NCBI GenBank assembly: GCA_964036045.1
Contig: OZ038378.1
Span: 41,230,001-41,294,000 of the forward strand
Direction of reading: 5' to 3'
Length of the DNA stretch: 64,000 bases
Origin: Eutreptiella sp. 'Long Island Sound 2002'
Taxonomy: Eukaryota; Protista; Euglenida
Below the pieces are notes generated by a model. The model was not told the DNA's origin. It was given only the letters and a program-made list of their open reading frames with translations, and ran no database searches. Position numbers and translations under genes: made by a program. Shown here in pieces: positions 11,255 to 35,500 of the stretch (positions are counted from its first letter, which is position 1; the number at the start of each line of letters is the position of its first letter).

Positions 11255-12479
11255 GTTGGCGTAGCGTATAAAAAGGGGGGGGACTAACAGCAAGATATCC
11301 CACATTGATAGCCCCGCGGCCACACATGTGAAGGCGTTCTCGCTTCACAAGAGCTACTTAGGGCTTCATGCAACGCGTACATCGAGCCCGGTGACTCCTA
11401 GCTATCGCGGCCTTTTTGCAGCACCGCGCTCCAATTATGTTTGTCCCCAATCTCGGTTGGAGCCTCTCTGGATCTGTAGCCCAACACCTCGCACGGACAT
11501 TGGGCCGAGGGGGCGTCCCACTACTGTACCCCATCCCAAACCAAGTATTGCCGTCCTTGAGTTGGCTTGCAGCCCCTCCGGAGCAATAGGCCAACGCCTC
11601 TTACGGCTGCGGGCACGAGAGGGCATTTTCGGCGACGTGGGGTGGGCACCAAACGCTGTGCTTCGGACACCGAATTCTCGTCCTCTTCTACGTCCATCAT
11701 GTCCTACTCATCCCATAAGCGACACAAAAAACGCAAAAACAACGCCAAAGCACAAACAAAAAGTGCAGGAGGCCGCCCCCCCCCTCCCTTCCCAAGAGTA
11801 CCCGTACGAATTTGAGTACCCGTGCCAACACTCGACCCCACCGCAACAATAGTTCCCGCATTCCCAATAGTACCCGTACGAAACACAACCAGCCCCAACC
11901 TCACAACCACATTATCGCTACATGCCACAAGCACCCCAACACCCACAACCACATCATCACAACCCATACCACTAGCACCCCAGCACCCGCATGCTCCATA
12001 CACGCTACGGCCCGAGTCCACACCACTTTGTGAGCCCCATAAGTCGCCACACGATCCACACGCCTCCTGCACGTAACCCTCCCACATCCATACGAGCCAT
12101 GTCAACACAACCCCTACGAGACTATTCACCAGCACCACAACCACGTAGAAAGCCAACTACAGCATCAATACCCCGCGCTCCACACAGAAGTAAACTACTC
12201 ACAGCACTCTGAGACAAAGGGACAACATCACCACGACCAACACTAACACGAGTGCCACTATCCCGCACCACACGCACAGGACAATCCGCAACCATACCAC
12301 CAACAGCAATCGCGCCTACAAGCGCTTAGCCAACCACTCCCACCTCCCAAACGGCAACAAACAGCACTAGGACCCCCCACATCCACGTCGGAAACACGGC
12401 CTCCCTCCCCTCAGCACACAAGCAGGCGGCCAACCAGCGCCGAGCATTGATTAGAGGCATTAAGGCAATGTGATGGATT

Positions 12480-12504
12480 CTTTCTGAGTGTCTTTTTTTT
12501 TTCG
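12480..12504 (+). other. Euglenid spliced-leader relic, copy 1
   Basis: CTTTCTGAGTGTCTTTTTTTTTTCG versus the Euglena SL as I recall it, (A)CTTTCTGAGTGTCTATTTTTTTTCG: 24/25 identical. Not followed by GT. Confidence 0.85.
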
Positions 12505-12520
12505 ATTCATGAAACTGGTA

Positions 12521-12540
12521 CTGAGTGTCTATTTTTTTTG
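12521..12540 (+). other. Euglenid spliced-leader relic, copy 2 (5'-truncated)
   Basis: CTGAGTGTCTATTTTTTTTG: 19 nt exact match to the SL, then G in place of CG. Confidence 0.8.
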
Positions 12541-12722
12541 GGTGTCTTCTTGCACATGGGCTGCCCGGGACACCATGGTCCCTAGCCTCTATCGTTGAAG
12601 CCACTGCTGACTGCGACAACACCGCCGTCACCTCTGACATTAGAAAGCCCTCTTGAAGTTGACAACTTTGAGACCATCACTGACGCCACTGTCGACAACA
12701 GCAAGCCCCTCTGAAGTGCGAC

Positions 12723-13679
12723 ATGTCCGACTCCTCCCCGGTCGAATCGCAAGAGAGTCCCACCCCCACGTCTACGACAAGAACGGAGGACTCCGGAGAC
12801 AGTGAGGCGTACTACCAACGCGACCCTCGTCATCACCACCGAAGCCCGTCGCGATCAACGCGCAGGAGGCCACGGCGCAGCATCAGTCCAACGCCAGCAG
12901 GGCCACGCAAGTACAGGAGGCGCTCCAGCTCCCGATCCAGGTCGCCTTCGCGACGATGGCACCAACGAAGGTCAAAATCTTGCTCCAGGTCACGTTCGCG
13001 GTCCGGAATACACATCCATCTCCACATTGACCAGCCCAAGCAGCTGCGCTCCCGCACGCCTACTCCGAGATCACCCAAACAGAACGGACCGCGACAAGTA
13101 GGCGGTCACAGGGCGGGGCCACAGCTTCCCTCTCAGCCCGGTACTCAGTCCCGGTCACAGCATCGGAAGAAGTGCTACAAGTTGGCGAAGTTGAGGAAGA
13201 AGGAGGCGGCAGAGCGCGAACGAGAGGCGCAGGGGCAGCAGCAGCAACGAGAAGGAGACGTTCCGGAGAGGGCACGGCCCGCAGCGTCGGCCCCCCCAAG
13301 TGCGGCACAAGGCGCATACCGCCACGGCGGGCGGGCGCCCCCAGGACACGAGGCGCTCACCGAGGACGAGCCCGCACAGAGCGTGGCACCAAGGGACCAG
13401 GCGACGGGGTTTGTACCAGCCCAGCTGTACACCATGAGCCACCACATCGAGAAGGCGCAGTATGTGGCGGTGGAGCGAGGACGGGACACGTTCACCCTCC
13501 TCAGCTACACAAAGACGTACGCCGTGATGCAATACACACCGGTAATACCACCAGGACAAGCGGACAAATGGCTGCAAAAGATGGCCACGACGCTTGGACA
13601 GGTGCTGGGCTTTGCAACGCCGCCGAAGCGTGCGCAAGGATCAAGCGGAGCACAGGGCGTACAAAAACTGGCACCTTGA
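12723..13679 (+). CDS. 318-aa ORF with acidic and RS-rich N-terminus; continues after a frameshift (13675-13782) into the uncharacterised LTM...LxGK domain
   Basis: ATG-started long ORF 183 nt after the SL relics. The frame-1 continuation APNMALTMGVSSNRGIPQYLWLQGKDWLV aligns ungapped with YR element 2 ORF4. Confidence 0.55.
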   Translation: MSDSSPVESQESPTPTSTTRTEDSGDSEAYYQRDPRHHHRSPSRSTRRRPRRSISPTPAGPRKYRRRSSSRSRSPSRRWHQRRSKSCSRSRSRSGIHIHLHIDQPKQLRSRTPTPRSPKQNGPRQVGGHRAGPQLPSQPGTQSRSQHRKKCYKLAKLRKKEAAEREREAQGQQQQREGDVPERARPAASAPPSAAQGAYRHGGRAPPGHEALTEDEPAQSVAPRDQATGFVPAQLYTMSHHIEKAQYVAVERGRDTFTLLSYTKTYAVMQYTPVIPPGQADKWLQKMATTLGQVLGFATPPKRAQGSSGAQGVQKLAP

Positions 13680-15092
13680 GGCCCCGAACATGGCCCTGAC
13701 CATGGGTGTATCCAGCAACCGGGGCATCCCGCAATACCTCTGGTTGCAAGGCAAGGATTGGCTGGTGTCGGAACGCCACAAAGCACCTGACCCCAAAGGG
13801 ATTGGACGCTATCCTCGGGGCAGAAGAGCCCGCACAATCAGCAGAGCCGTAGAGGGCACAGCAAGCGCCACGACCACCGACGGGGGGACAAGCAGGCTGT
13901 GACATAGCCCTGCCCTACAACGAGGTCATGCGCCGCGCACAGATGCAAGAGGCAGCGCAAGCGCCAGTGGGAGGACCCGGCGGCCAGCCACGGCACATGG
14001 CAGCCTAGCCACCGCAGCGTGACACGCCACCGCCGCCATACACGCGGCGACGTGAGGTCTACCATGCCGCAGAACGAGCCGCGCGTTCCGCCACCAGCGC
14101 ACCCAGACAAGATCCACGAGCGTGGGCAAGGTCATCGGAGGGAGACCGCTTCAAAGGACGAGGAGGAAAAGGACATCCCCGGTCGAAGCTGTGTGCGATG
14201 CATTTGCTGAGAAGGGCCCATTTTACGTATAGACGCACACTGTGCCGTGTCGCACCGCCGATGCCATCGCTCTGCATGTCTGCCATCGTAGGGGAAAGGG
14301 CGCCGATAACAATCATCCGCCAACCGGCGGCCCGCCGAGATGACCATGAACACCGCCCCAGCAGCGCGGGCGAGATGCACCTCGTCACCTACACCCGCAC
14401 CCGTCCCGTGCCACGAGCTGACACGCGAGAAGCTACCGGGCACCACATTGACTTGCCTGGAAGCTCCGCAGTCACCGGGGTGCATTCCCCCACGAAGACG
14501 TTGACAGTCCCCCACACTCTAGCAGCCTACCGAGCTAACCACGCGCACCGTGCCATCATTGTGGGCGAGATGCACCTGGTCACCGGCATACAGAGTCGTC
14601 CCATACCGAAGTGCCTCGCTGCAACGCACCTCCTCTATCTGACCGACGTGACCCACACACAATGCTAGTCAATGCTACTGTCAAATCAGGATAGCAATGA
14701 CGCTTCCTCCATAGCCGTTGCATGACGACCAGTGCTCTTCATTGGCCAGGGGCAGGAGGGATGCGAGGCATCAGTGGAGAGGGTTAAGACCGCCCCATGT
14801 TGTCAGGGCATACCATGCAGGTAGGACCCTGGAACGACATAGGCCGGCGCCGCATCCTGTAGGCCAGGAAGCGTGGCTCCACGACCCAACGGAAGATGGG
14901 GACGTGGAGTCGAATCAGGGACCAAAGATCCCAAAGAGAAGCGCAAATGTGTCAAACCCACGAAGGCTCTCGTCCGTGCTCACCCCAATCAAACGGCTCT
15001 TTGGAGGTGCACCAACACCAGAGCCGCAGGACGGTACCATAGTTACGTAGCCCTCGAAGTAAAGCAGGTTCAGCACATACGGCATCCCCTGC

Positions 15093-15139
15093 ACCCTCCC
15101 CCCTTCACTCACTCATCTCTCCCTCCATCTCTCCGACAG
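15093..15139 (+). promoter_or_regulatory. Polypyrimidine tract + AG, candidate trans-splice acceptor for element 1 gag
   Basis: ~40-nt C/T-rich tract, AG at 15138-15139, ATG at 15183. Confidence 0.4.
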
Positions 15140-15182
15140 TCTCGTTTTTCATCAAGGTAGTCAGGCCTCCCCGCAAAGGCAT

Positions 15183-16356
15183 ATGGACGAATTCGATGGG
15201 GACGGAGCCTGGTCCTCGGAGCGGCTGCTGGCTCACGACGAGTCCGTGCTTGACGCGGCATGGGCTGAGCTCATGCAGCAACACTGGCGGGCGACGGAGG
15301 TCCCGCTAGAGCGGCGCGGCACCGTGCTCGACGTGGGGATCAACAGCTGGGTCCGGACGGCGCGCCTCAACGTGTCCAAGCTGGCGGTCATCTTCAATCG
15401 CGGGCTGGGGGTGTGCCTGGTGTGCAAGAACTTCGTGGCGTACAGAGACCCCTTTCCCGTACGGCCCGGGACCTGCATGGGGCATCGAGGTACCCAACGT
15501 AGAGCTTTTGCAGCCCCAATCGGAGGCGGCCTTCGAGCTCTGCGCGTCACTGTAAAAACTCGAGCGCCGGGCGGGGCAAGGAGCGCACGGCGCTGGTGGC
15601 GACAACAGCGGCAACGCGGCGGATCCATCGGGCACGCAGCCAGCGTACGGCCCAGGGGACAATAGAGGGCACAACGACAGGGCGAGCGACAAGGTCAAGT
15701 GGAACGTCCTGACGGCGTCGGCGGCCCGCAGCACGACGCGACGGCCGGGGGCCACGAGGTAGACTATCAAATCATGCAGGGCGCTGGAGCAGGAGCTCAA
15801 AAACCACGCGGCGGAGAGCGAGGCGGAGCCTAGCGCCTGGGCGCGAAAGGTGTGGAAAATCGTGCTGGTCTGCGACGTGACCGGGGCTGACGAATTGAAG
15901 AACAAGGCCCGGGAGCGACGGAGGAAAGAGAGGAAGCTGGAAAAACGACAGCGCCGGAAGGAGCGCAAGCGGCGCGGTAAAAGCAAACGGCGAGACTCTA
16001 GCTCCGACAGCAACGACTCATCGAGCTGCAGCAGCAACAGCAGCAACAGCTCGGGGTCGTCATCATCGTCGTCGGGACGATCCTCGCGAGCGGCAAGAAG
16101 CAGACCAAGAGCACCGCGCCGGGCGGGAAACGACATCGCAGGGCGCAAAGAAGGAGAAATCTGGCGGCGCACAGGCTCAGCCGCCAACACCGAGTTCACC
16201 CTACTGGACGGCCGCCGCCACTTTAAAAGTAAGCGCTCAGGGGCCTGGGAAGACTGCACAGACCCGCCAAAGTCGAAGTGCACAGACTGCAGCCAGGCAC
16301 ACTGGTACTTCGACAGGGACGAGTGGGGCTGTGTCAAAGGCAAGGGCACCAAATGA
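15183..16356 (+). pseudogene. gag-like ORF(s) of element 1, frameshifted
   Basis: K/R- and S-rich tract, then CTDCSQAHWYF knuckle directly upstream of the YR. Confidence 0.65.
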
Positions 16357-16368
16357 CAGCAGGAGCGC

Positions 16369-17925
16369 ATGCTGCCCGTGGCGGAGGCCGTCGAACGCCT
16401 TGGGCACGCTATGGGGGACGGCTGCGGCGCGGGGTACGACGCCAGTGTCGTGCGGGGCCTCAGCAAATCCACGCTAGACGGGTACCTGGGGGCCCTCGCG
16501 AAGCTCCGGAGGCGCGAACGCATGAAGTCGGGGTCCGGAAGAAGGCGCGTGTTGGAGGACGAGCTCGGCGACATCGCTGCGCAGAACGTTGGGGAGGGCA
16601 ACATCAAGAAACTACTCTCGGGGTTGCGGCTACTCGAAAAACTGGGATGGATCAAAAGTACCGTACGGCCCGGGGACTGGCACCTCGTTCCGGGGGTGGA
16701 GAAGGAGCATGAGCTGCAGGGGCGAGGCGCCGTCAAAGAGTGGGCGAGCATGGAAGCGTTGCGGTACATTGCGGGCATCGCGTGCACCAGGGCGGAGTGG
16801 CAGCTCCTTGCGCTGGCAGCGGTGTCGTGCGCCCACTGCCTCCGAGCGAGCGAAGCAATCACGGCCCACGTCGAGGGCAGCGAGTTGGTGTTCCAGGACA
16901 CCAAGTCCCGCAGCGGCGAGCAACGGCAAGAGATGGCATAGTGGACGGCGAAGTGGGCCGCATTCCTGGCGCGCCTCAAGGCAAGCCACGGATACCACCC
17001 CGACGTCCCTGCGTGGTTTCAAGGAACGGGCGGGCTACACAGGGGACTCCACAGCGTCCTGGACCGACCCCGCGGATCCTTCAAGTACCTGCGCTGGCAC
17101 TCGTTCAGACGATTCGGGGCAGCCCAGCTCCACGGCCTTGGACTTCCAGCGCAGTTCATCATGCTCTGGGGGGGGGGGGGGTGGAAGTCAACGGCGGTGG
17201 CGGATATATACTACAAGGCGCCGCCGCGATGGCAGTTTGTGCGAGGGGGACCCATTCCCCTGCCAGAGTACGGGGCAAGCGAAACGATGGCGCGGATGCA
17301 GCCCGGGACAACGTTGGGGATGTGGCCAAGCTGGATTAGGAGCGATCTCGAGATCCCCCAGGTGCGACTTGCTCGGGCAGAACCGAGTGCGGTGGGCAGT
17401 ACTGCCCACGTGCAGAAAAGGTCCCGAACGGAGTCGTTCAAGCGCGACCGCCGCCCAAGACCGTCAAACGCCACGGGGGGGCGACGCCAGGAGCGCGGAG
17501 GAGACTGCCAGCGGACAGCGGAGGCGCAGGCAAACCGGACGGAGAAGCGGCAGGCGGTGCATAGGCATCACTGGGACGCGCGGGGGGTGACGATCGAGGA
17601 CGAGCACCTGGCGCGGGCGATCAGCGAGCTGCCGGGAGTGAAGCGGGGCCGCAGGGGCATGGTCCACAAAGGCGTCCAGGAGCTGATCATGGCGGCGGCG
17701 CAGCTAAGGCTGGGGTCCGGCGATGCTACTGCGAAGCTGCGACTCACTGCAGGGGGTACTGGACAACGGACTGGACGGCGAGGAGGACGGGTATTACTTG
17801 TCGGAGGACGAAGACGAGATGGACCCGGAGACGGCGGCAAAGGGGCTCGGATCGGCGGGCCGTGTGCACGTGCATGCGCCGCTCTGGAGGCGGCCGGCGC
17901 CACAGGATCTCCTGAAGGCTTATGA
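16369..17925 (+). pseudogene. Tyrosine recombinase of element 1 (one TAG at 16939-16941)
   Basis: Catalytic set in one frame: LRASEA (R), DTKS (K), WHSFRR (HxxR), GWKS (W), DIYY (Y). Confidence 0.92.
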
Positions 17926-19008
17926 GAAGCACGCCAAAACCAGGGGGGCCGACCTGAAGTCGCACTGCACTAAGCTTCCGCTCATGATGCGGGCCCTGTG
18001 CGTAGACGCGCGGGGCGTGAAACGCACGCGCCTCAGGCCCACCTCACGGGCATTCCTGTGCCCCAAGAATAGGCAAATGTGTAGAACGATCTTGGATGCA
18101 TCTCCTATAAACGAGGCACACCCCAGACGGCCCCAAAAGTTCACCCTCCTGGGCCTGGAACAGCTCAGCGACTAGATGCGGGGGGGGGGGGGGTGCGTGG
18201 ATGGCCAAACTCGACCTCCAGAATGCATTCTGGAGCGTTGTGCTCCCGGGGGGCTGGCACAGGGTTTTTGTTCTGCAAACCGCCGACGTGCGGTCGTACC
18301 GCTACACGCGCCTCCCCTTCGGATGGCACTACTCCCCCCTCATCTGCCAGTCACTCGTCCGGGGTATCGTGGCTGCCGCCCTGCGAGGCGTGCGGGCCCG
18401 GGCATGGGTGTATATAGACGACATACTCGTCGCCCTCGCAATCCATCCGAGGTGCGGTGCGCTGTGCGGCTCATCATCCGGCACCTGCAGCGGGCGCGTT
18501 GTATAATTAGCCAGAAAAGCGAAACAACACCCACGATGGAGCTCAGCTTCATTGGCAAACAAATAAACACGGATGCAAGATACTTCCAAAACGTCCCTGG
18601 CGGGCTGCGCAGTGCGCTCCGAGCATGGGTGAGGGCCATGGGCCGTGGAACCATCCAGCCGTGCAAGCTCAGAAAGCTGCTTGGGCAGCTATGCTGGCTG
18701 TCAAGGCCCAATGCCGGCCTCTCTTGCTTTATTGCGGGGAGCTATCAGGCACTGGACTCGGGCGCGCGGTGGTTCACACGGAGTATGGCGCGAGGCCTCG
18801 GCACCCTGATTCTGTTCAGCGCTGTAGCCAAGTCCTATCCGCCGGACAACCACGAGGGAGGGGCACAACTGGTGCCGGGCAAGGGCGACCTCCTACTGTT
18901 TGCGGACGCGGCACCAGAAGGGGTACGGTTCAGGGTAGGGCTGGTGGGCGACAGGCGATTCCGCCGCTCCGTCCGCTGCCCGGCATGGGTTACGTCACTC
19001 CAGTCTGC
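17800..19008 (+). pseudogene. RT/RNase H of element 1, disrupted
   Basis: AFLCPKN, AKLDLQNAFW, RLPFGW, YIDD and RH LFADA. TAG at 18173-18175 and a frameshift at the poly-G run. Confidence 0.92.
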
Positions 19009-19013
19009 AGTGG

Positions 19014-20887
19014 GTGCATGGAGGAATCCTGAGTTGTGCCTGTTCAATGGGGGCAGGGATGCGGGGGCTGAACATCGGAAACACAAGGCACACCACCAGC
19101 CGATGCCCCGCGAATGAGGCAGAATACTACATCACCCTAGGGAAAACCACGCTCCACGATTGGCAGCCAAACCCCCACAATCGTGGGGTACTCCACCGGG
19201 GCACCACCTACCAAGACATGGCGGCAGCCATGGCAAGAAAGGAGCTGTACCAGGACATCCTAGCGACACAACCATGGAACATAGATCTGTCCGATAGTGT
19301 GGTCTCCCCGGTGCGACTGCTACCCGACCACAAGGCACGGCCACACTCACCCACCGTAGATGCACTGAGCAGCATGAACCCCGGGGACACAGCAGTCTGG
19401 ACTGTGCCGTTACACACATCTAGGAAAGAGGAGTCTTTCACAAATGAGGGGCGGCGGATAGTGTGGACGGGAAACCCAACGACCGTAGTGTCGGCCATCA
19501 TTGATGCCATGGAACGAATGCTACAACAAGAGTCACAGGCACGCTACCTGTGGGTGACATTAGAAACGAAACTTCGGCCCGTCGGCCCGGCACATGTGAT
19601 GCTCCAGTTGGATGGAAGGGGGATCATGGGGAAGTTGCGACGCAAGATGGTTGCCGCCATAGTCGACAAATCCGGGTACTTTCAGGTTGCGAGGACCACG
19701 TCTCCTGAGCAGCTGGACGTAACTAGAGTGTCCATGTGGGACGTACGCATGGTAGCATGCCTGTTGAGCAGCACTGCTCAATGGCTTCCCTATCAAGATC
19801 CCGAGCCGGTACTTGCAGAACCCGCAGGTGTTTCCCCCACGGGTGGAAGTCCCGCCCAGACCTTACCGGTTGCTGTTGCCCAGTTCGGTTGAAAAAAGAA
19901 CCCAATTCTACCTTTTCGTAAATTCCTCCACGGATGACGCATCCTCGGTGGCCCGCCGTAACTCGGTGTTCCCATGGACGGGCGCGACGCGAATAGCCGC
20001 CCCGGATGAGACAAGTTACTTGTGGGAATACCAAATCCCTCAGGTGCTCCATGACAGAATGCAGGCCTTCCTGGAACACCGGGACACTCAGGTACAGTGG
20101 CTCGACCTCATCGACCACGAAAAGTTGTACATAAGCGAAACCCAATGAAGGGAAAGAAGGGATACAATATATCAAGTCCCCAAAAGACTTGGCGGTTGAA
20201 CTGGCGGCGGCAATGGACAAGGACTTGGATGACAATGTTCCCTTGCCTCGCCCGCCCTTCTCGACAGAGGTGTTCCCGACGGGTGTGCCACACATGCGGT
20301 ACCAGCGCATTGTGACACTTGCCAACGAGAACCAGGCCTGAGAGGTGGTACGAGGGCTATGGCAGAACAACCGGTTGGTACTGAAGAAGCTGACGACGGA
20401 TCGTCGCGTCAGATTTGGGGTGTGGGGGGCAAGGACGGAGGAGGACCGGCAACGGGCACCCCGAGAACCGGTACTGGAAGGGCAGGCGCTAATTATCGCG
20501 CCGTCTGGCGTGTTTGCGGCCACCGTACGCAAATATGCGGCGCTGTTCGGTCTCTTCACCACAGTGTCGACCCGAGGAGCATCCCACATATTGGGGCGCA
20601 CCGAGTATGTGGTCACGTATGGCCGCAAGCTGAGCGCTATGATCAGCCACGGTGTCACGCTGGACTGCACAGTGGGTGAGGTTACATTTGAGGCAAATTG
20701 CACGGAGGATGACCCCATGGGAGCCAAACGGGCCTTCGGAGAGAGGCAGGGACAAATGCTGGACAACCAAGAGGACATGGGAGATTGGTGGAGGATGGAA
20801 ATGGGCCGAGAGTTGGGTGCGGAGACGGCGGTGGTCGAGGAGGCCAACCGCCTGACGGCTGACAACCTGGCGGCCCTTTCGGGCTGA
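19014..20887 (+). pseudogene. Unknown ORF (~550-600 aa across frameshifts and a stop) upstream of the LINE; candidate ORF1
   Basis: Consecutive ORFs 19014-19892, 19813-20148 and 20345-20887. Paralogues at 6900-7450 and 36620-38150. Confidence 0.6.
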
Positions 20888-21599
20888 ATCCCTTGCACAT
20901 CACCACAGGACACACGGGGTTGCACGGGGAGCACACAGGTCCCCCCACAAGGGACGACACACGGCGGCACGGCTGGGGGATACCGCGAGGGACCGCACGG
21001 GACAACACCATCACTGGGAACGCCACTGGGAGACACGACACAGGGGATCATATTTCACAACACACCCAACCAATACTTGACACACGCAATCCTGTGGTCT
21101 ATGATGTGCATGAATCTCAGGCACAAACCGCGGCGTTGGTGGATTCGCATGGTGGTGGCCATACTTGCCTGCCAAGTGGCCCTGTCCGTCGAGACCTCCT
21201 CTGACACACATACCCTAAGCACAAGTAGAAAGTCGTGCCGTGCCCGCATCCGACGACGGCATGAGCCGCGTTCGTCATGGTTCCTGGACAACATACCATG
21301 GTACTGGAGGGTGCTCACGGGTGCTTGGGGGAAATTCTACCCCACAGAGTACTCATCCCCATGCACGACACAGCACGCTGAATGGCCTGCCTGCCGTGAT
21401 GACCTGCCCTACCAATGGCAAGCGGCCCCGTTGTGAGACACGGCGCAACGACTGGTGACCCTGTCAAATGACGTGCCCCCAAACCCTAATAGAGCGCAAC
21501 AGGTTTGCTGCCGGGACCCAGTCATACTGCCTCATGCCCGATGGAAACTTTAAACCCTAACACTATCGGTTGATGTGCACCCAAACCGAGGTCACCCCA

Positions 21600-24500
21600 A
21601 TACGACCACGTTGCACGCCCTGACTCTGAACGTTGGCGGCCGCATCTCAGCAGGCGGAGGTGGGGCCGCCTCCAGCAAGAAATAACTGCCTCCTCCCCCC
21701 ATATCATTGCCCTCCAAGAGGTCCGCTTTAAAACAGGTGAAGCCCACCTTGCATACATTGCAAAGGCCTGCCCAAACTACCAAGCGCTCGCTCATGACGA
21801 CAAACGCCCCGACATGATGTTTCTTGTGCATGAGAGGGTCCACAAATACTGCAAATTGATGGCCCACCGAGCGCCCCATGCCATAGCTCTCCGCGTCCAG
21901 CTCCCGGGCGTGCCTGAATTTACCTTGGTGAACCAGCATGGGCCGTTCACCTAACGGGAAAGGGAGGCCTTAGACGCCTGGATTGCTTCCGTTCCCAATG
22001 TGGGCATTCTTGGAGGGGACACTCAATGACTGAATGTGGCACGCAAGTCCAGGTCGCCGGAGGATAGGGCACGACTACTCGACACCGGGCGCTTTGTTGA
22101 CCCGCACTACCAAACGGTACCTCAACCACAGGGCCCGAGCCACACCCGAGGGGGCAAACGCCTGGTCGCGCTCCTCCTGTCCCCAAACAACATGGAATGC
22201 CCTCACGCCGGTGGCCTACCAAGTGACCACGTTCCCGTCGGCAAGGGGCCACGCAGGTGTGGAAATCCACACCACGGTCGTGCTCCTTGAGCCGCAGTCT
22301 CCAGATCCAGACGTCATGAGCATCCGAGACTGGACGGGTAGAGACCTGAAGCGTTTCCGTGCACATATGGGAAGGTGGTACCGAGGCGTCCCGAAAAACA
22401 TGACCCTGGAGACTGCCCGTAGTATGGTGCCGAAAGAGATTGCCCGGTATGTCGCTGCACACAAGAAGCCCGACAAACGACCGGGCCAGGCTCACCAGGA
22501 TTTGCAGACCCGTCTCGCCCAGAAACCTTTTGACCACACCGCGCTGAAGCACTGGGGGGAGCACATGCGACGGAAGCGACACACGGAGGTGATGAAGAAA
22601 CTACGCCGCTTCCGCAAATCCGCGGTTGGGAGCACAGGGACGTTCTTTGCGGACCTCGCCACGTGGCTTGTGAGGCCGGCCAGCGTCTCGTCCATGTCCC
22701 CCACTCTGGCATCGGCGACCAAAAGGTTGCCTGATTTTGCGGGGGACCCGCATTGGGACCCTGAGAAGGCCTTCCAGGTTTTGCCCAGTCTCCGCGTGCC
22801 CGACACCCCCGTGAGTTCCGACTCCGCCAACGTGGCGCGAGTTCCACGACGTGGCCAATCAGCCCAAGAAAAAGGCGATGGGAATGGACGCAGTTCCGCC
22901 GCACACAATACAGTGGCTGCCTGAGAACGTGCAATGGATCCTATACAGGAGAGTCTGTGAGGTTTGGCACCATGGACAGATGCCGACAGATTGGACTGAC
23001 GCCCGCATATCACTGTTGTACAATAACGGCGACCCCAGGGATGCGAGCAACTACCGACCTATAGCAGTGTCCACCTGCATGTACCAAATTACCACGAAGT
23101 CGATCGTGCGGCGCATCAAGACACCCCTCACCGAAGTGCTTTCTGAACACCAAGCGGGAGGGCGAAGGGGACATACCACACTGTCCCAAGCTATAAAACT
23201 ATGGTCGTCGGCGCTGAACATGCCGGAGACACCGGATGTGGTACTGCTCGATATTGCCAAGGCGTATCCAAGCACCCCCCACCCGCTGCTGTGGGCTGCA
23301 ATGCAGCAGGTGGGGGTACCGGATCGCTACATCTCCATGATGCAATACACATACCAAGAGACGCGGTGCTACTATCGGGTGAATGGGGAAAAACACTCAT
23401 ACCACCAGAGGAGGGGGGTGAAGGAGGGGTGCCCCCTCTCCCGCCTACTCTTTTGTGTGGTGTATGAGATGTTTCGAGGGACGCTGGCGGTAGAATTCCC
23501 CTCCGTCCACTTCTGTGCGTACATGGATGATGTGGCCTTCATCTCGCCGGACCGGTGGACTACGATGGCCGTGCTTAGGAGGGTCACGGACTTGGGAAAC
23601 ACGCTGGGCTTCCACCTGCACAAGGGGAAAACAGAGGTGTACTGCTGGTCGGCAACCTACAAGGTGGATCAGCTACTGTGGGACGGGCAGGTTAATACTG
23701 TCAGACCCCCCATCTTCAGCCACCCGGGACACATCATTGCACACCCAGAGTGGGCACACAAGGCGCGGTCCGACTACCTGGTATTGATTAGGTCGGACCT
23801 AGCACAATATGCACACATTCCCATGGATGGCTGGGAACGAAAACAGGTGGTCATCTCCATCTTGATGCCCAGGTGGCTCCACCGGGCGGTGCTCATCCCC
23901 TTGGACAGGTGGTAAAAAGAAGTAGACGACCTGTGTTCGGTGTTTGTCCATCACCCTAAAGGCATGGTCCCGGGACGAAATACTAAACAACTAAGTGCCC
24001 CGGTATCTTGCGGAGGCATGGGGTTGCACCAGATGTACTGGGCCACCGGCGGCGATTCATCACAACTATGCAGCACACCATACACCACCATCACCAAGCA
24101 TTTCGGGTATGTATGAACGCATCAGTTGAACGTACCCAGGCGCCCTTTTTTGCGTACGTGACCTTGTTGAACTCAATGGGAGCAATCTCGGGCATATCAC
24201 TGCAGCACCCCCGTCGCCGTACCGGGTGGCCGAGGCTTATCGACAGTGAGGACACGCAGGACGGTCGCATGATTCACAATCAAATGGCCCCCGTCGGCCA
24301 AGAAGACTTAGCGCACCGGTACGGCCTTGCCAAACCTCGGTGGCATGTCGTGGAAGGAGGGCAGGTCCCGGCAGCCTACCAACTCATTGTGGTAGGGGGC
24401 CGTGAAGTGTACACCAACGGCTGCGAGCCACAGGGGACAACATGGTATACGGATGGAAGCAAGAAGGGCGATCCGGCGGGTATGGGGGGCGCCACGGCCG

Positions 24501-26025
24501 ACTGTCGAGCAGGGTTCGGACTCCACTGCGGACCACTGCACTTGATTGGACGGGTGCGGGGTCCTCAAACCCTGTACCGGGCGGAGCTCATGGGCATGTA
24601 TGTAGCCTCCTGCCTGGCACAAGGTGGTGATGAGGTAGTATTGGACAACCAAGCCGCAACGGATTGTGCGACGGCCGCGCCACACCGCCAAGTCTGTGAC
24701 GTGGACGTCCGCCAGCCATTAGCAGAGGAGCTCCATGACAAGTCACTGATGCCCAGGTGGGTGCCACGCCACCGGGAAGAACGCCAGGCGCGGACCATTC
24801 AGGAAGTTCGAGACATACGGGGCAATAACCTGTCGGATTTGCTGGCGTCCATGGGCAGCGAGCTCCTAGTGACACCATACACGCCAGATGCGCCGCACGG
24901 CATAGAAGTGGGGGGGGCACGGAGGCACCCACACCAGCAAAAAATTGGATTACTGCGATGCGCCCACACGCCACACCAGAGGGGGTGCACTGGGCAACAT
25001 GGCTGCCCCTGAAGCCAAAGCGCCGCAGGTTGTGGCTTCAGTGGTTGTGCGGGAACGTGTGGTGCAAAGGGTGTACGCCACCATGGCAGAAGTCGACCCA
25101 ACCGTGTGCCCTGTGTGGGTCCACACACCAGGGAGCGGCACAGACACGGATTGTGCTGTGTGGGACGTGGAGGACACTGTTCCTGGACGAGTGGGCGAAA
25201 AGCTGGGGACCGTGGGGGTCTATGGCCTGGCAGTGGCTCTCGACAACAACGCCAGACAACCTTGCCCGTGTCGCGAAGTTCCACATTACCCTGTCTCTTG
25301 TGTGTTCGATCCCTCCTGACCACATGCCCCATTTTCGGTACAGGGTGGCGGTACACCAGTACAAGTGCATGCAGCTGGCGGGTGAGCTGCGCCACAACCT
25401 ACCCATGCCGCAGGACCCGGTAGAGGAGCAACGCCCCTCATCGGGTGGAACGGCCATTTGGTACACGGCCTTCCGCCGCAGGGCCCAGTGCCTGCCCCCT
25501 ACCGAGGAACGCCTTGTGCGACAGTGCCACAACAACCCCCGAAAACGCCTTGCGGCTGGCGGCCACCAAAGGCCGGCAAAACCCAAAAGAGACCACAGGC
25601 TGGAAACGAGACGCACGGTGGCGAAACTCCTGCGTCAACCGTACACTGTCCCAAGGGCATGTATGGTAATCAGGGCTCTACCGGTGCTGACAGGGGGGAC
25701 AGGCTCGCTGGTGCGGAGACTTTCCTCGACGCAGGCATGCACTTGACACCGTATGTGACCCCCGCAAAACAGTGGCGGCCGGTTACGGGGGCAACCTACG
25801 TGGCTGCCAGCAATCTGCTGCAAACGGCCCGATCACTGATCCGGGGAACTGTTAGGGGAATCCTGGCGCAACGAAAGGTCACTCACTGTCAGAGTGGCGG
25901 TGACGTGGGCCGCCCGCGTGGACACCTGTGCCAGGGTGCTCGCCGTGTCCGCCCAACGCACACGGTTCTGGTTCCACCACAGTGTCCGCGTGACGCTCTA
26001 CGCGGTGCACCGTGCCCGTCAGCGT
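21600..26025 (+). mobile_element. Non-LTR retrotransposon ORF2 remnant: APE endonuclease - RT - RNase H (I-group/ingi-like domain order)
   Basis: ILGGD(x)ND and SDHVPV (APE); NYRPIAV, QAGGR, LDIAKAY, GVKEGCPLS and YMDD (RT, 22851-23915); WYTDGS, RAEL, LDN and GNNLSD (RH, 24008-25012); CALCGSTH...C downstream. Confidence 0.92.
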
Positions 26026-26173
26026 ATCAAGGGATTCGCCTATAGGCGAATCACAGGATTCACCCCATAATACCACTCATATGCACTATCACTATAGAAT
26101 CTTTTAAAGATTTTTGGGTTCTCGGGCCCGTCAGGCCAAGTAAAGAGATCCAGACCAAATGTCAGCCATCAGC

Positions 26174-27455
26174 ATGGAGTCCCTCACCTTCAAAGATTTC
26201 GTCTCCAAGGGCCAGTTCGAGGTCTACAAGAGCACCCTCCCCGCAGACCACGGCGAGAGCGGCAGTGGAAATCATGCAGCGCATCGGAGATGCGGGGGTG
26301 GACCATGACAAATGGCTGCAGGACCTCAAGGTGGCCTCTGGTTGGGACGAAGATCCACTCAAACTCCTCCACGCCATTGCTGGCTATGAGAGCTGCTGTC
26401 GATGCACAATTGAGGTCCAGACAAGGGAGTTCAAGGCGAAAAAGGAGACGGAGCTGGCGGTCAGCGACGAGATAAGGGCTCGCATCAAGTCGTTTTTGGA
26501 GTCGCAGTGGAGCACTTTTGTGAAGCTCTGCTCCAGTGCCGAAATCGCGAAGGCGGGAATGGAGGTGGCACAGCTGGCAGCCAAGCACCGCCTAACCATC
26601 TGAGAGTTTGCTGAGGACATCCCGGAGACCCGAAAGCCAGAAGACCCCGAATTCGTGCTAAAGGCAATGGGAGCGCTGGCCCTCTTCGACAACTTCAAGT
26701 GGATCATCATCCGGGAAGGCCACAAGCTGAATCTGGTAACGGCAGATGCATCGGATGTGGGAAAACCAAACGCATCTGTAGACCCGGAGGAGCAGGAGAT
26801 CTCAAAACAGATGGAGGCGCTCAAAGTGAGATTGGAGCACAAGCGGAGAGCAAAAATCGTGAGACCCCTGACCTCTGCAGCGCTGGACGAGTTTGTTGAT
26901 GCCCCGGAAAATGCCAAATGGATGCGTGAGACGACAGCTTCACTGAAGAAATTCCTGGAGTCCAACGAGGAGGAAAAAGGGGAGACGCTGGCAAAGGAGC
27001 TGTGGGAGGTGATGCTGGTCTCCAAGGACAACTATAAAGAGAAGTACCCCAGCGGGGGCCACAGTGTGACTCGTGGCTCACATAAGGGCACCGGGAAGCA
27101 ACCACAATCCCGGGTTGCGCCGAGGTCTACCAAAGAGTTGGAAAGACTGGGAGCACGCAGATGGATTGAAGCGACCCGAAAAGGGAGATTCAGGTTCGCG
27201 GAGTTGGAGAACATCACCTACTACTGCACTGCGAGGGGCGACAACACATATGAAGTGGCGAAGGGCCCCCCGGGGCCTTGTGGAGAATGTGGAGACAGCC
27301 ACCGGATATGGGACTGCGAGAGTGGACTCCCCCCGGAAGGGGGGGGAGGGGGGGGCATGGCGGAGGACAGCCCAAACAGGTTCCTTTGGCATGAAGGAGA
27401 AGTGGAGGGGGAGAGCGAAGACGACGACATCCCCAGGGAATGGCCGGCATACTGA
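26174..27455 (+). pseudogene. gag-like ORF of element 2 (frameshift near 26255, TGA at 26601-26603)
   Basis: Helical, charged protein ending in YEVAKGPPGPCGECGDSHRIWDC knuckle. Confidence 0.8.
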
Positions 27456-27470
27456 CGGGCATATGCCGCA

Positions 27471-28382
27471 TTGTGTCGAGCCCAGGCGGACAGCAAGGAT
27501 GGGGTCCTGGAAAGCAACTGGCAAGTCCTCGCAAACTCCTGTAGCACGACATCGCTGGGTACGTACAAGATGGGAATGCGACGACTCCGACAGACACATA
27601 TCGCCCGGCCGGAGTGGGGACCATACAAGGTCGTGGAGCAAGTCGTGTGTGATGCCATTCGAGAGGGAAAAGGCAGCAGTTCGGTCAAAACAATCCTCAA
27701 TGCGGCGGCCATGGCATACACCATGGGGGTGGTTAGCGAGCCGGTCCCAAAACGACTCTGGAAGGCATTCAAGGCAGCGCAGCGGCTGGAAGAGAAGTCA
27801 ACACAGGAGTGGGGCAGTTTTGAGGCACTGCAGATCATGGCGCACCAAGTGGATTCAGAGCTGGAGTGGTGTGTGGTGGGACTCGCGATACTTTCAACGT
27901 TGCTGGGCCTCAGAGTCGGCGAGGCGGCCAGCATCAGCTTCCACAGGCTGGGGGTTCTAGCAGGGACGGCGGCGTTCTATGACCGCAAAGTCCACAGGGC
28001 TTGGATTACCCGTACGGTTTCAGGAGTGGCCCTCAAATGGTTGCAGTTCTGCGCCTGGATTGCACAAAGATGCTGGAACCTCGACAAGTTCCAGCGACTG
28101 GTCTCTGAGGACAAACTGCAGCGTGTCATGGCGACCCTTTTGCGTGGATCAACGCGGAAGGACCTCAGGTGGCATGCATGGAGGCGCCTGGGCCCAGCGA
28201 CCATGTACAAGGCTGGGGGCAAGATCCCTAGCATCAAGGCGTGGTTCAGGTGGAGGAGCACAAGAACGGCAATGGCCTACATCAACTGCCCGCACCCAGG
28301 GCGCATCCGGCACCCATTCACAACGCCTACCCCCCCCAGTTACCTCAAGGGGAGGCCATGGATTGCGGGAACGGCAACCTGA
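27471..28382 (+). CDS. Tyrosine recombinase of element 2, apparently intact (303 aa)
   Basis: GLRVGEA (R), YDRK (K), WHAWRR (HxxR), WFRWRS (W), AMAY (Y). Confidence 0.93.
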   Translation: MCRAQADSKDGVLESNWQVLANSCSTTSLGTYKMGMRRLRQTHIARPEWGPYKVVEQVVCDAIREGKGSSSVKTILNAAAMAYTMGVVSEPVPKRLWKAFKAAQRLEEKSTQEWGSFEALQIMAHQVDSELEWCVVGLAILSTLLGLRVGEAASISFHRLGVLAGTAAFYDRKVHRAWITRTVSGVALKWLQFCAWIAQRCWNLDKFQRLVSEDKLQRVMATLLRGSTRKDLRWHAWRRLGPATMYKAGGKIPSIKAWFRWRSTRTAMAYINCPHPGRIRHPFTTPTPPSYLKGRPWIAGTAT

Positions 28383-30522
28383 CGGTGTACGGAGTTCTGG
28401 GCCCCTGAGGCCAACGATATCCCTGAGGGGAGCACCCCAGAGAGCGACTCTGGAGATTCCACGTGCGCTGGATCATCCTCCGATAGCCCCTCACCTCGGA
28501 AGGCCGATGGCAGGAGGGGAAAGAGGAGACGCAGTGCGTGAGGAGGCGAATGGCCGGACGGCCTGTGGGGTAGGGGGGGGGGGAGGTAAATCGAGACGGG
28601 CGTCACCCGACAACGAGGTGGGCAAGCAGCACAAGCCACGTAGGTTAAAGTGCCTCATGGGAGTTGGAGGAGGAAGTACTGCAGGAGCGTGGGTCACATA
28701 TAGGCGGGCGCGGGCGTGTGCGTGGTTGGCTTCGAGACGGATCGAGCGGGTCTCGAATATCCCGCGAAATGAGCTTTTTCGGGCCGCGCTTGCGGTAATC
28801 CTCCGGGCGCGGGAGCGCCTCAGAGATGTGGACGGTGGGCAGGCACACCTGGACACGATCCTGCGCCACATGGGGGATCTGCATGAGCTCAACTGGGACC
28901 TGCTGGGTCACGACTACGACGGATATGACGGGGATGGCCCGTCGGGAGGTATCTCACAAAGAATGATTGATGCGGGCCTTGGAGAGAAGGGCAGCCTGGA
29001 CATCCCTTTAGATGTGTGGAACGCGAACATCCCAAAGCGCCTCATTTGGGATATACGGAGTTGGAAGTCGGGGCACGATTGTGGAGGATTTGATGTATGG
29101 CAGCCGTCGTTGCACACCGAACGCATGATCAGAGTGCTCGTGGACGATGGGTTCCTGTGCAGGGACCCCACGTGTTTGGGTGCCCTTGAGTGGGAGGACC
29201 TCACGGACAATGTGTCGGCTTTCGTTAAGCCCAAAAATGATGTGAAGTGCTCCTTCATCATTGACATGCGAAATCTGAACGACTGCTCGAAGGTGCCGCT
29301 GCGCAAGGTCAGGCTTCCATCTATTCACACGGTCTGTCAGACCATCCAATGGGAGATACACCGTGGAGCACCATTGTGGGGCATTACCTTGGACAAATCC
29401 AACTTCTACTGAAGCCTGCAAATCCCAGCTGAAAATTGGGGACTGTTTCGCATACAGGGGGCGCACTTCCACTGCCTCCCGTTTGGGTGGAAGTTTTCCC
29501 CGGTATTGGCACAGGACACATTGGCAGCGCTGTTGAAGGAGTTCTTTGACAACCACGTGGAGGGGATCGATGTCTACCGTTTCCATTATTTGGATGATGT
29601 GCTGATCTTGTCACGTGACAGGGAGTGCATGAAAAGCCTCGGCCATCGGCTGGCGTGTTTCTTGACGGCAAAGGGCCTGCGCATCTCCATAAAATCCTGC
29701 CTCGAGCCACATCAGAATGTCCTGTGGCTGGCGAAGATGTTCGACCTCGCCAAAGGGGAGGTGCGGAACACAGACAAAATGCTCACAAAGTGCTTGGGGA
29801 TTGCCATAAAAACGGCCTGCTCGCCTGTGTCTCCAAAGGTGGCGGAACGGGTCACGGGAAAAATGCAATGGGCATTTCGACCACGAAAAGGGGTCACCCT
29901 GATTCTGCAGGGGTGGCACAGGTTCCGTTGGGGACATCATCGGTTTCAGCACCGCCCGAGCCCGGCCCTGATATCGGCACTGTTCGATGCGCTGGCGATA
30001 TCGTACGTGCCAGCCACGGTTGACCCAAGGCCTGGGCATTTTGGCTTTGCGCCGTTCCTGGCAGTGGATGCAGCAGAGACTGCTGGTGGCTACCGCCTGG
30101 GTATCTGTGGACGCAATGGAGTCATGCGAACGCGAAAGATCCCGGCGCAGAACCAGCAACAGGCGGAGCTCGGTGGTGTCCTACATGCCTGTAGGTTTGC
30201 GGTGACCCAGAAGTGGCACAGGGTCTCATTGTTTGTGGACAATACAGCGGCCTGCTACAGTGCAACCAATATGACGGCGTCGACGAGGGCATGTACGCAA
30301 GTGAAGATACTCCGTGCTTTTTGGAATTTGTTGTGGCACACGGGCTTGGTCTTGAATGTTGTCTGGGTTGATACTGCGCGCATGCCTGCTGATGTTGTGT
30401 CCCGTTTGCCAGACCTGACGCCAGCAAGCATCACCAAGGCAAAAATTGAGGCGGCACATAAGTGGGGTACATTGTGCGGAGAGCTGCACCTTGTGCAGAG
30501 TTTTGGATCGGTCCGACTGTAG
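27979..30522 (+). pseudogene. RT/RNase H of element 2; single TGA at 29410-29412 at a conserved Trp
   Basis: AFVKPK, LDKSNFY*, CLPFGW, YLDD; RH LAVDA, QAEL, VDN, ADVVSR. Both parts are in frame 1. Confidence 0.95.
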
Positions 30523-30566
30523 CGGGGGGGGGTGGGGGTTTCATCGCGTGAGCGATGGCTGGAGTG

Positions 30567-30589
30567 CCCCCTCTTTTTTGCTGTAGCAG
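30567..30589 (+). promoter_or_regulatory. Polypyrimidine tract + AG, candidate splice acceptor for ORF4
   Basis: CCCCCTCTTTTTTGCTGTAGCAG ends 11 nt before the ATG at 30601. Confidence 0.5.
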
Positions 30590-30600
30590 GCCCCTGCAAC

Positions 30601-31125
30601 ATGTCTGAGTGGGGCGACCGACATGAGGAGGAGTCCCATGACGAGGGGAAAGTGGGGTCGAAACGCCCACGAGGATCTCGGGGCCCGGAGGGCAAGCTGG
30701 CGCAGAAGGCGCGCACTCTGAGGCGGAGACCTGAGAGAGCGGAAGAGCACCTCCATGCAGAACAGCCCAGATACCGCCTGGGAGGGATGACCGAGCAATC
30801 CTTCGAGTTAGTGCTGTGCCGGCCAGTACCAGAACGGGACCTCCACAACGCCTGGCAGACCTTCTGTGGATGGATCACGCGACGCACCAGGGCGCAGTAT
30901 GCCATGGCACGGGTCGAGCCTGCTCAGAAGAGTAAGGACCAGACCCAACGCCACCTTTACCTCGACCGCCACGAGCTGCGACTGGCACCAGGAGTCAGGC
31001 TGACGATGTCCTTCACCCAAGAGGCCACTGCAGTGCAAAGAGTCACCCTCAATGGAAAAGCGGACCTCATCAAAGATGTATTCAAGCCTGTGAAGGATGA
31101 TCTGGAACAAACGGACTCAGACTGA
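30601..31125 (+). CDS. Accessory ORF4 of element 2 (174 aa), unknown function
   Basis: Intact ATG-to-TGA ORF between RH and B1. Charged N-terminus; the C-terminal domain is shared with 13675-13782, 5781-6125 and 46314-46670. Confidence 0.7.
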   Translation: MSEWGDRHEEESHDEGKVGSKRPRGSRGPEGKLAQKARTLRRRPERAEEHLHAEQPRYRLGGMTEQSFELVLCRPVPERDLHNAWQTFCGWITRRTRAQYAMARVEPAQKSKDQTQRHLYLDRHELRLAPGVRLTMSFTQEATAVQRVTLNGKADLIKDVFKPVKDDLEQTDSD

Positions 31126-31770
31126 GACGAGGCTGACATGAGGATGACTGTCACTCCTGCACGAACTGTCCATGGCGCTAATGTACCAGAGTGAGAAAAA
31201 AGTGGGCTGGAGAGGAGAGGTGGGGGAGAGGGACGACACGTGGTGCAGGCAGAGCAGGACCATACCCGGGGTATATAAAAGAGAGCTCCCCTGGCAAGTG
31301 CGATGGATGAGACGGCACAGTGTGAGTCAGTGAGCGAGCACGCCTTTATATGTGGAACCACGAGAGCCATCATGAGTGAGAGTCAGAGATGACCCACGGT
31401 GCCCTTCGGGCCTGGCGCGCCAATGAAGGAGCAAGCATCAGTGTTGGCTTTGTGTACTGTGTATGTGTGAGCTGTACCTGTCAGGAGGTTAGGGGGGAAT
31501 CAAGGGATTCGCCTATAGGCGAATCACAGGATTCACCCCATAATACCACTCATATGCACTATCACTATAGAATCTTTTAAAGATTTTTGGGCCCACCCAC
31601 CCGCACGGACACTTACTCACACTTCAGGAACACCATTGATACTATCATGGAGAAGTGTATCATAGATCCACGGCACACGAGTCTACCGCCAGTGAAGGAG
31701 CAAGCATCAGTGTTGGCTTTGTGTACTGTGTATGTGTGAGCTGTACCTGTCAGGAGGTTAGGGGGGAATC

Positions 31771-32562
31771 CTTTTGGGCACACTATCAAGCCTGCGCCGC
31801 CTAGCCACACGGGCCCTTCGGCACCTGGACGTTTTGGAGCTGCCACTGCGCTCTGCGCTCGCCCACACAGCCACAGTTGCCCGGGCCAACATTAGTCACC
31901 AATTGCTGTCCTACCAGAAGTTCCGCACATGGGCTGCTATGGTGACCCATAAACTGGGGGACAGAGACAAGTGGCTCACCGCGGCCATGTGCGGCGCCTT
32001 GCAACTTGCCCGCACCAGCCAATATAGGTCCATGCGAAGATGGCGGCAAGAGTCACTCGACGAGGTGCGGACCTGTATGAGCAGGTGGCTGATGGACCAC
32101 CAAACCTTTGTGCTTTTCCGCCACTGGGTGCGACAAGGCTATGCGGAAGTCCACGCCCGCCATCGCTCAGACGTCGCTTGCCCCGCCGGACGCTCCATGA
32201 GTATGGTCACAATACGCGGTACGACATCTAGCACTTCACGAGCACTTTGGGCGGCCTCATCTAGCACACGTGGCAATGTCGGCGTCGGATCAAGTCCTCG
32301 ACCCATTCGCCCCCGTGCCTGCAAGGCGCCCCGACCAAATCGGCGTCAACGAGCCCCGGGCACCAATTACCCGCCCAGCAGGGGCCGTCTGCCGTCCCTT
32401 CGCAACGGCACCAGCCGAAGCACACCTCTGTGCACCACAGCAATGCCCCGCAATGCGGGCAACCGGGCCGGGAACGGGAGCCCCCCCCCCCCTCCCCGAG
32501 TTTCTCGGGAGTTGCCCCTCGACGTGGGTAGTTGCGAATGGCCACGAGACCAAGGACATTGA
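31771..32562 (+). pseudogene. Continuation of the LINE C-terminal region split by element 2
   Basis: Joining 26028 to 31771 reads HRARQR-I-LLGTLSSLRR in frame into ORF 31774-32562. Confidence 0.75.
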
Positions 32563-35500
32563 CCGAAGGTCCCCGCAGGCGGAGCACCAAACCCCACCCC
32601 CGCCACCCAGCACACGGCCACCATTTGGCCCCACCCGCCATCCGCACTTTCGACGCCACCACCCCTTGGCAAGCCTCGTGAGGCGAACTTTGGCGGAACG
32701 GGCGCTTGTGACAACCAGATAATGCTTGCATTCGTTACGTGGCGCGCGCTACGTCTCATCTTGTGTTGGCCGCAACACGAATCTGGATCGCAGCGGCAGC
32801 GAGGTAGGGAACCCCTCCCGCTGCTTATTTCAATGGCCGCCCCAAGTCACGGTCCTCCGCAATGCTGGCAGGACGTGCCACGAGATTCTGGGCCGACAGC
32901 TCTGGTTTCCTCCTACGACAACGAAAAGGAAGACGAATAAAACAATACAGTGCATTGCAAGTGTGCTCGTTGTGGCGAGCGCGATGGGCGGGGCACGTGC
33001 GGACATCATGACGAGCAAGATAGCAGACACATGGGCGGCATTAGGGGGACCTTGGGGAGGCTATGCACAAGAACGCACTCGATTGCATTTGCGAAGATTA
33101 GGTGCTACTTGATGGCGGCGGCCCGTGCACGGAGGCTAGCGTGCCCCTGGCAGAGAACGTTGCTGGGGCGGGGGCGAGCTACGTGGGCGTCCTTGTGAGC
33201 GGGGCGGCCGCCGGAATCTGCGGGACAGTGACGGGGGCTACTGGCGGCGGGAGCACAGGCGCAGGCGCGGGACATGTCGTCCCGGGAGTATCGGGTTGGG
33301 CGCGAGATCAGAGACAGCCGGGCTTGCTGTGCTATCCTCCTTGAAGCGGGGCGCGGGGTGGGGGGGGCTTGCTACTCTAGCGGTGGCGTCCATTAACCTC
33401 CGAACAATCGTTGCGTCTCTACGGACCGTGTGTTCCCTCGTGCACCTGGGGCACACGTGCTGCCAGACATTTAGTGATACTAATGGGTGGATTTCTCTTC
33501 ATGCGGCCAAAGCCAGCACACGTGGTTAATCGGTACTTGGCACATATCATCTCACCAAGGAGAACGGAACTTAATTAAAAAGTCACCAGCATTCGCGCGG
33601 TGGTCTTTGCGGCCACCGCCCATGACATGACATCTGCAAACAGCAAAACAACAGTCCTGTCACCCGAGCCCCTTTCCCAACCCCCCCCCCCCCACCCCTC
33701 CTTCAGGGGGCTGAAACAACCCCCCCCCCCCCCGCACGCAAACCTTTTTTCAACATCCCCATTATTTCGGCGGGGTTGGGTCGTCAAATGCCCTTAAGGC
33801 TCCCCCCTCCCAACGGATCAATTTCAAAAAAGGGCCGTTTTGGTCCGACATGAGGTACCGTCTACTTCTTGCGTGTCGCGCGGCATTGGTGGAGACTGTT
33901 CTGTCGTGTGTTCCCTGGCGGTTTTTGTTGCTTGCCCGGGGGGGGGGGGGTGACAAACACCGACATACACTCCACATATGACAAAACACGAAGAATACAA
34001 TTGCACACTGGACTTGACATGCTTTGAAGACGAGGGTCAGTAGAGTCCGTGTATATTGCGAGACAGATTGGTGCCACATGGGAAGAGGGTTAACGTGTTT
34101 CCGTGGAGGCGTTCGCCTGCCTGCGGCATAGAGCGTGCAACGAACTAGAGGGTGTGCACATGCATGCAAAGTGTGATGCACGAGCAAATACACGGCCACA
34201 CACGCGCTCCGTGGGAAAAGGACGCTCACCCGCCCCCCCCCCCCCCCCCGCACCCCGACTCGGACAACAAAATGCGTCCACAACGTGTAACACGATGGTG
34301 ACGGGGAGGGCAACCCCCGACCGCGAAGCGGCACCGCGGTGTTGGGACTACCTGGATCTCCTACCACCCTACACCCATGTAACCTCGGTCACCTTCGGCA
34401 CATCCAGTTTGGGAACAAAAGGCGCATGATGACTTCGTGGGGGCGGCCGCATATGATCTGCCTCCATACCAATACGTGCCACCAAACGCGTGCAAGCGGG
34501 TGCAGCCGCTGAACACCCTCTTGATCCCACGATGCACGTACCGCACCTTGTTTGTCAGCAACGAGTTCCACGTTCAAAGCCGGAGACTCCATTTGCTTGC
34601 AGTGTGTGCTTATGGTGGAGGGCATGGAACTCAACAAGGTTGACATTCACAAATTGTGCAACGTTCTCTCTGTCCCGTTCCCCCCCCCGCCTGGGTGGAA
34701 CGGGGTCGCACCAACTGTTGTGGGCCCATGGGGCACGCTTCATCACAATGGTACGGAACATGTTACACTCACTTCCGATATCCAGTGGCTATGACCCCAG
34801 GAAAGAACTACCCTTTGGAGTGTTGCCTATCCGAGAACCTGGCTTTCCTCATCTGGCTGGGTGTCGACACTGCACTTCACGTAGCACCTCCGCAGTTACC
34901 GGCTGGGGGGCCCAACGTCATCGACATGGAAAGCGTCGATGACGGCGTCCTCCTCTGAGCCCGCAAAGGGCAGGTGGGCGGTACCCTCCGCACGCGCCAC
35001 TACATTGCCCCACCGGTGCCACGAAGACCCCTTGGCGGACACGGTGCCGGCAAGCTACCACCCTATCAGCATCGCAGGCATACCGTGCTACCGCCAGTCG
35101 GAATATCCTTGTACTCCGGCGGCAGCCTTGAAACAGTGTACATTGCAGGCTCGAAATACCAAGCGGCGGGGGCCGATGTGACAAAAGGGCCTCTTCGCAT
35201 CCTTGCCTGGGCACCAGGCCCACAGTAGTCCTACAGGGCTGCAATATGTGTAGAGCAGCCGTTGGCGCCGCCATGGCATCCGACGGTGACACTAAACATG
35301 TCGACACCATTACCGTCGGAAAGTGCGCTCACCGCCGACCCGCGCACCAACGTTCCGACGCCGACGTCCGCCACAAAATGTGCTACTAGTTGCACCAGAG
35401 ACACGTCATCGCGGAGTGGATCACCCGCCACCGCTTTGAGACAAACGCCTGCAAAGCACCAGAAACGCGAACAAACTTGCCACAATTGGGAAGTATGTGT

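Follow-up and report, generated by a model that had tools for sequence, protein, structure and literature searches.

How do two copies of a spliced leader (SL), an RNA tag that is normally added only to messages, come to be written into genomic DNA, and what do they mark? This question was raised by the original prediction, which described two tandem SL relics in front of an open reading frame and inferred that the locus had gone through mRNA-to-DNA recycling, possibly twice. The analysed window is a 64-kb stretch of DNA (C1:41230001-41294000 of a 2.28-Gb assembly; C numbers denote sequences of this assembly and L numbers the loci fetched from it). The observation is confirmed and the main inference is supported, although two corrections are needed. 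The open reading frame that follows is ORF1 of an autonomous LINE, so the recycled RNA is a retrotransposon's own transcript and not a host mRNA. In addition, the second round of recycling remains an inference.

The two leaders and the insertion they cap

The outer leader, SL1 (12480-12504, + strand), matches the Euglena gracilis SL exon at 24 of 25 positions, with one A>T change. It is followed by a 16-nt spacer (12505-12520, + strand; ATTCATGAAACTGGTA) and by the inner leader, SL2 (12521-12541, + strand), which lacks the first 5 nt of the leader. SL2 has an exact 19-nt core at 12521-12539 and continues to 12541 with one C>G change, ending in GG in place of CG. Both copies lie in the sense orientation of the ORF at 12723-13679. 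A 19-mer search allowing up to 3 mismatches found only these two sites in the window and none in 100 shuffled sequences. The species' own SL is the same sequence, since ten loci in the genome (L001-L009 and L011) carry the 26-nt leader ACTTTCTGAGTGTCTATTTTTTTTCG between a conserved 70-nt upstream block and a conserved GT intron and are therefore SL RNA genes. The same 26 nt are given as the E. gracilis SL in PMC6242988. Contigs from three public runs in two studies span 12300-12550 without any difference, so the tandem arrangement is not a local assembly error.

A genome search with 12480-14480 returned a repeat family in which homology to five sister copies (L032-L036) starts exactly at SL2. 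Nine of eleven related copies examined begin with an SL, while their upstream flanks are unrelated. Of the other two, L041 keeps only a remnant of the leader and L038 is 5'-truncated further in. Comparison with longer stretches of sister copies showed that the window copy is colinear over 12521-15037, 19072-26028 and 31769-32107 and is interrupted by two foreign insertions. The first LINE segment comprises a 5' UTR (12542-12722) and ORF1 (12723-13679), both on the + strand. ORF1 is basic and Arg/Ser-rich and has no Pfam match. The second segment (19072-26028, + strand) contains RVT_1 at about 23043-23660 (E 3.7e-23) and a weak RNase H match at about 24434-24850. The better-preserved copy L049 has RVT_1 (E 1.7e-13), a weak RNase H match and a marginal Exo_endo_phos match (25.2 bits against a cut-off of 24.5). 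This APE domain was not detected in the broken window copy, where the homologous region lies at about 21630-22080. The third segment (31769-32107, + strand) forms the 3' terminus, and at least 30 family copies stop matching at 32107. There is no poly(A), and the last ORF of the family is still open at the terminus. Copy L049 is 3'-truncated and followed by a long CA/CACG microsatellite. Taken together, the element is a non-LTR retrotransposon of about 9.8 kb. Its only close RT relatives came from unnamed ENA assemblies, presumably of this organism or close kin. Other LINE RTs are 25-31% identical, and no clade was assigned. The frames of the window copy are broken and its terminal branch is 0.058 substitutions per site, indicating an old, dead copy, and one mismatch in each leader fits that age.

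The two interruptions are not part of the LINE. The first (15038-19071, 4.0 kb) is absent from sister copies L043, L047 and L049, has no terminal repeats, and the ORFs at 15183-19117 gave no Pfam matches. The second (26029-31768, 5.7 kb) is absent from copy L046 and bounded by 100% identical 93-nt direct repeats (26026-26118 and 31499-31591), which suggest a recent insertion. An additional 84-nt repeat of its end lies at 31418-31501 and 31687-31770. No Pfam matches were found for this insert or for the ORF crossing the 3' end, and a pairwise BLASTP between LINE ORF1 (12723-13676) and the ORF at 30532-31122 showed no significant similarity (best E 0.33).

The 5' flank (12381-12521) was joined to the sequence after 32107. 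The joined sequence aligns contiguously, at about 70% identity, with six to eight copies of another repeat, here called Rep-X, which have no SL, no spacer and no LINE at that point. In the window, Rep-X forms the 5' flank (12397-12479, + strand) and the 3' flank (32108-32663, + strand), and about 48 nt of it are missing. SL1, the spacer, SL2 and the LINE therefore form a single insertion (12480-32107) with SL1 at its tip. The 5' junction is ambiguous by about 3 nt (CTT microhomology) and the 3' junction over about 6 nt (AAACCT). No target-site duplication was found. In other copies (L056-L063), Rep-X lies 11-14 kb from a second, very abundant repeat that starts at 34382 in the window (40 or more copies at 78-80%), and both may belong to one large element. 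The upstream part at 12000-12440 is strikingly A/C-rich on the + strand.

Leaders elsewhere in the genome

The SL core, with up to 1 mismatch, occurs 8,280 times in the genome, against 1 hit for the reversed control. In contrast, a conserved 24-mer of the SL RNA intron occurs 1,163 times, and 1,924 exact leaders are followed by a base other than G, so they cannot be exon-intron junctions. Most genomic leaders, about 7,000 SL cores, are therefore outside SL RNA genes. This warns annotators that SL matches in euglenid genomes are mostly not SL RNA genes. Among 20 such loci sampled, several unrelated repeat families each begin with the SL at different flanks. The SL RNA genes themselves occur in clusters spaced about 1-60 kb apart (C1:29-458 kb, C13:25-404 kb and C3:164.04-164.57 Mb, in mixed orientation on C3) and not in a tight 0.6-kb tandem array, so they seem to be embedded in larger repeat units.

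Tandem leaders are also not restricted to this locus. The relatives L035, L037 and L039 carry an SL followed by a second leader that begins right after the leader's internal AG. Genome-wide, this junction occurs 108 times, with 0 in the reversed-pattern control. All 20 loci fetched show the 16-nt remainder of the leader repeated 2 to 4 times. In 18 of them, the leader's first 10 nt, intact or with one or two changes, precede the outermost unit only, while L083 keeps just the last 4 of these nt and L084 has lost them. Stack depth differs within families, with 3 units in L067 against 2 in L073, and 3 in L068 against 2 in L079. This is what re-trans-splicing at the AG of a DNA-encoded leader predicts. 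Spacer-type tandems like that of the window recur with different spacers at L051, L052 and L013, in 12 exact genomic hits against 0 in the control, and in further contigs from the read data. Moreover, the first 11-12 nt of the LINE body (12542-12552 in the window and the 5' ends of L037, L039, L040 and L042) consist of TGTCT, a short T-run and then CG or G. They resemble a decayed copy of the 16-nt unit, which may be an older third layer of recycling in the family's ancestor.

Origin of the two leaders

The explanation in which we have good, though not complete, confidence is that the LINE transcript, like host mRNAs, receives the 26-nt leader by trans-splicing, and that full-length reverse transcription writes it into DNA at the front of each new copy. 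In this scenario, SL2 was already DNA-encoded in a parental copy that had lost 5 nt of the leader at its own insertion. A transcript starting upstream of that parent was trans-spliced again at an acceptor 16 nt upstream of the element. The resulting RNA, consisting of SL1, 16 nt of parental flank, SL2 and the LINE, was then reverse transcribed and inserted into Rep-X with a target deletion of about 48 nt. Trans-splicing of this transcript is inferred from DNA alone, without RNA data, and single-SL copies could also be inherited through DNA from an SL-bearing master without fresh splicing. The absence of a poly(A) tract and of a target-site duplication does not fit processed retrocopies and counts against this explanation. 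The element ends at its own family-specific 3' terminus. The GG variant shared by SL2 and L034 was considered as a sign of DNA inheritance, but the tree does not support this, because L034 pairs with L033, which has CG.

The two-round reading has one real rival, which is considered unlikely but is not excluded. While copying the SL-capped LINE RNA, the reverse transcriptase could have jumped at the CTGA microhomology near the RNA's 5' end onto a second SL-bearing mRNA, landing 16-20 nt downstream of that mRNA's leader, and copied it to its cap. Such a one-step template switch would produce the same SL-spacer-SL layout, and SL2 lacks exactly the 5 nt before CTGA. No parental copy carrying the spacer plus SL2 exists in the assembly. 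A 26-mer search with up to 3 mismatches found only the window and one locus on C16 without a LINE (L064; C16:47017500-47022500, minus strand), which matches the spacer plus CTGA at 20 of 21 positions and whose flanks do not align with the window beyond about 30 nt. This match places the join at a 4-nt microhomology shared with the leader, which fits either a microhomology-mediated 5' junction of the parent or a template switch, with the spacer representing the parental 5' flank or the 5' end of a donor mRNA, respectively. An ATG lies 5 nt into the spacer, and an 80-codon ORF follows at C16. However, C16 has GG where an acceptor AG is needed, and its short ORF lies in repetitive-looking sequence with recurring similar peptide stretches, suggesting a roughly 200-nt tandem or dispersed repeat and not a gene. 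The SL-plus-spacer junction occurs nowhere else in the genome, and the spacer is absent from other LINE copies and from Rep-X. The 108 stacked junctions suggest that re-splicing of DNA-encoded leaders is common here, which makes recycling the simpler explanation for spaced tandems too. Both readings involve two RNA-level leader additions being fixed in DNA.

The remaining alternatives are very unlikely. The original prediction had named a decayed SL RNA gene, with SL2 read as an exon followed by a GT intron, and the footprint of an SL-targeting CRE/SLACS-like element, and both are effectively refuted. SL2 is indeed followed by G-GT, but neither the conserved upstream block nor the intron of the SL RNA genes is present. 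The sequence after SL2 is instead 88-91% identical to LINE copies, Rfam found nothing in the whole window, and Rep-X has no SL at this site. Although a retrotransposon directly abuts SL sequence, as would be expected for an element of the SLACS/CZAR/CRE type, the leader is complete up to its 3' end and not split. The insertion is flanked by an unrelated repeat that is continuous in other copies and not by SL RNA gene halves, sister copies lie at unrelated sites, and the endonuclease domain found in the family, marginal as it is, is APE-type. Insertion of the LINE into an older SL1-bearing retrocopy is rejected by the unique SL1-spacer junction and by the Rep-X copies lacking both. Finally, slippage or tandem duplication of a T-rich tract without an RNA intermediate has in its favour that the T-run is slippage-prone and 16-nt stacks could grow by replication slippage once two units exist. 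Nevertheless, the two leaders of the window are separated by a unique spacer and differ at their ends. In stacked loci, the unit boundary always falls right after the leader's AG, even where the downstream sequence is unrelated and offers no microhomology, and the reversed-pattern controls gave only 0-1 hits.

Comparison with known systems and other SL-capped families

The closest known system is mRNA recycling marked by relict DinoSL upstream of dinoflagellate retrogenes (Song et al. 2017, PMC5585692, and Slamovits and Keeling 2008 as cited there). There, the DNA-encoded leader also marks retroposed transcripts, up to 8 leaders occur in tandem, an AG inside the leader serves as the acceptor for the next round, and both adjoining and spaced relicts occur, with gaps of 6 to about 450 bp. 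The present case concerns a euglenid (Euglenozoa) with an unrelated 26-nt SL, the tagged unit is an autonomous LINE and not a host gene, and the AG lies at leader positions 9-10, so that each round leaves a 16-nt unit. No report of genomic SL relicts in euglenids was found in our literature searches, and the paper on the chromosome-level E. gracilis assembly does not mention the SL. The trypanosomatid L1Tc/ingi elements (PMC1874656, PMC8190864) are LINEs of the same phylum in hosts that trans-splice their mRNAs, but they are described as carrying the 77-nt Pr77 internal promoter and giving unspliced transcripts. Their DNA copies do not start with the SL, whereas the Euglena family starts with the host SL, an opposite strategy. 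The SLACS, CZAR and CRE elements of trypanosomatid SL RNA genes also lie next to SL sequence, but appear to split the SL exon within these genes and to use a restriction-like endonuclease. In the family described here, the leader is whole, lies at the element's own 5' end and occurs at dispersed sites.

DNA-encoded leaders have served as a natural tag for retroposition only in dinoflagellates. Their occurrence on a LINE in a euglenid, with the same AG-driven stacking, suggests that any organism with SL trans-splicing and active reverse transcriptase can record RNA-to-DNA recycling. This provides a simple handle for cataloguing retrocopies in this genome, for counting their rounds of retroposition and for asking how much retroposition inflated the genome to 2.3 Gb. 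A broader reading, which we regard as only slightly more likely than not, is that Euglena retroelements and retrocopies at thousands of loci routinely form their 5' ends through the host's SL trans-splicing. As the leader contains its own 3'-splice-site-like motif (CTTTCTGAG), every further round of transcription, re-splicing and retroposition would add one 16-nt unit or one spacer-separated leader. Tandem leaders would then be a built-in generation counter, and the DNA-encoded leader may help new copies to be expressed. Two copies of another SL-capped family, L018 (C1:3.00 Mb) and L030 (C1:13.01 Mb), are both immediately preceded by (TG)n microsatellites, which may be a target preference or part of the element. 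One SL-capped family shows three different leader architectures in three copies, namely a mixed spacer and stack in L013, a 3-unit stack in L068 and a 2-unit stack in L079, which makes it well suited for reconstructing successive rounds.
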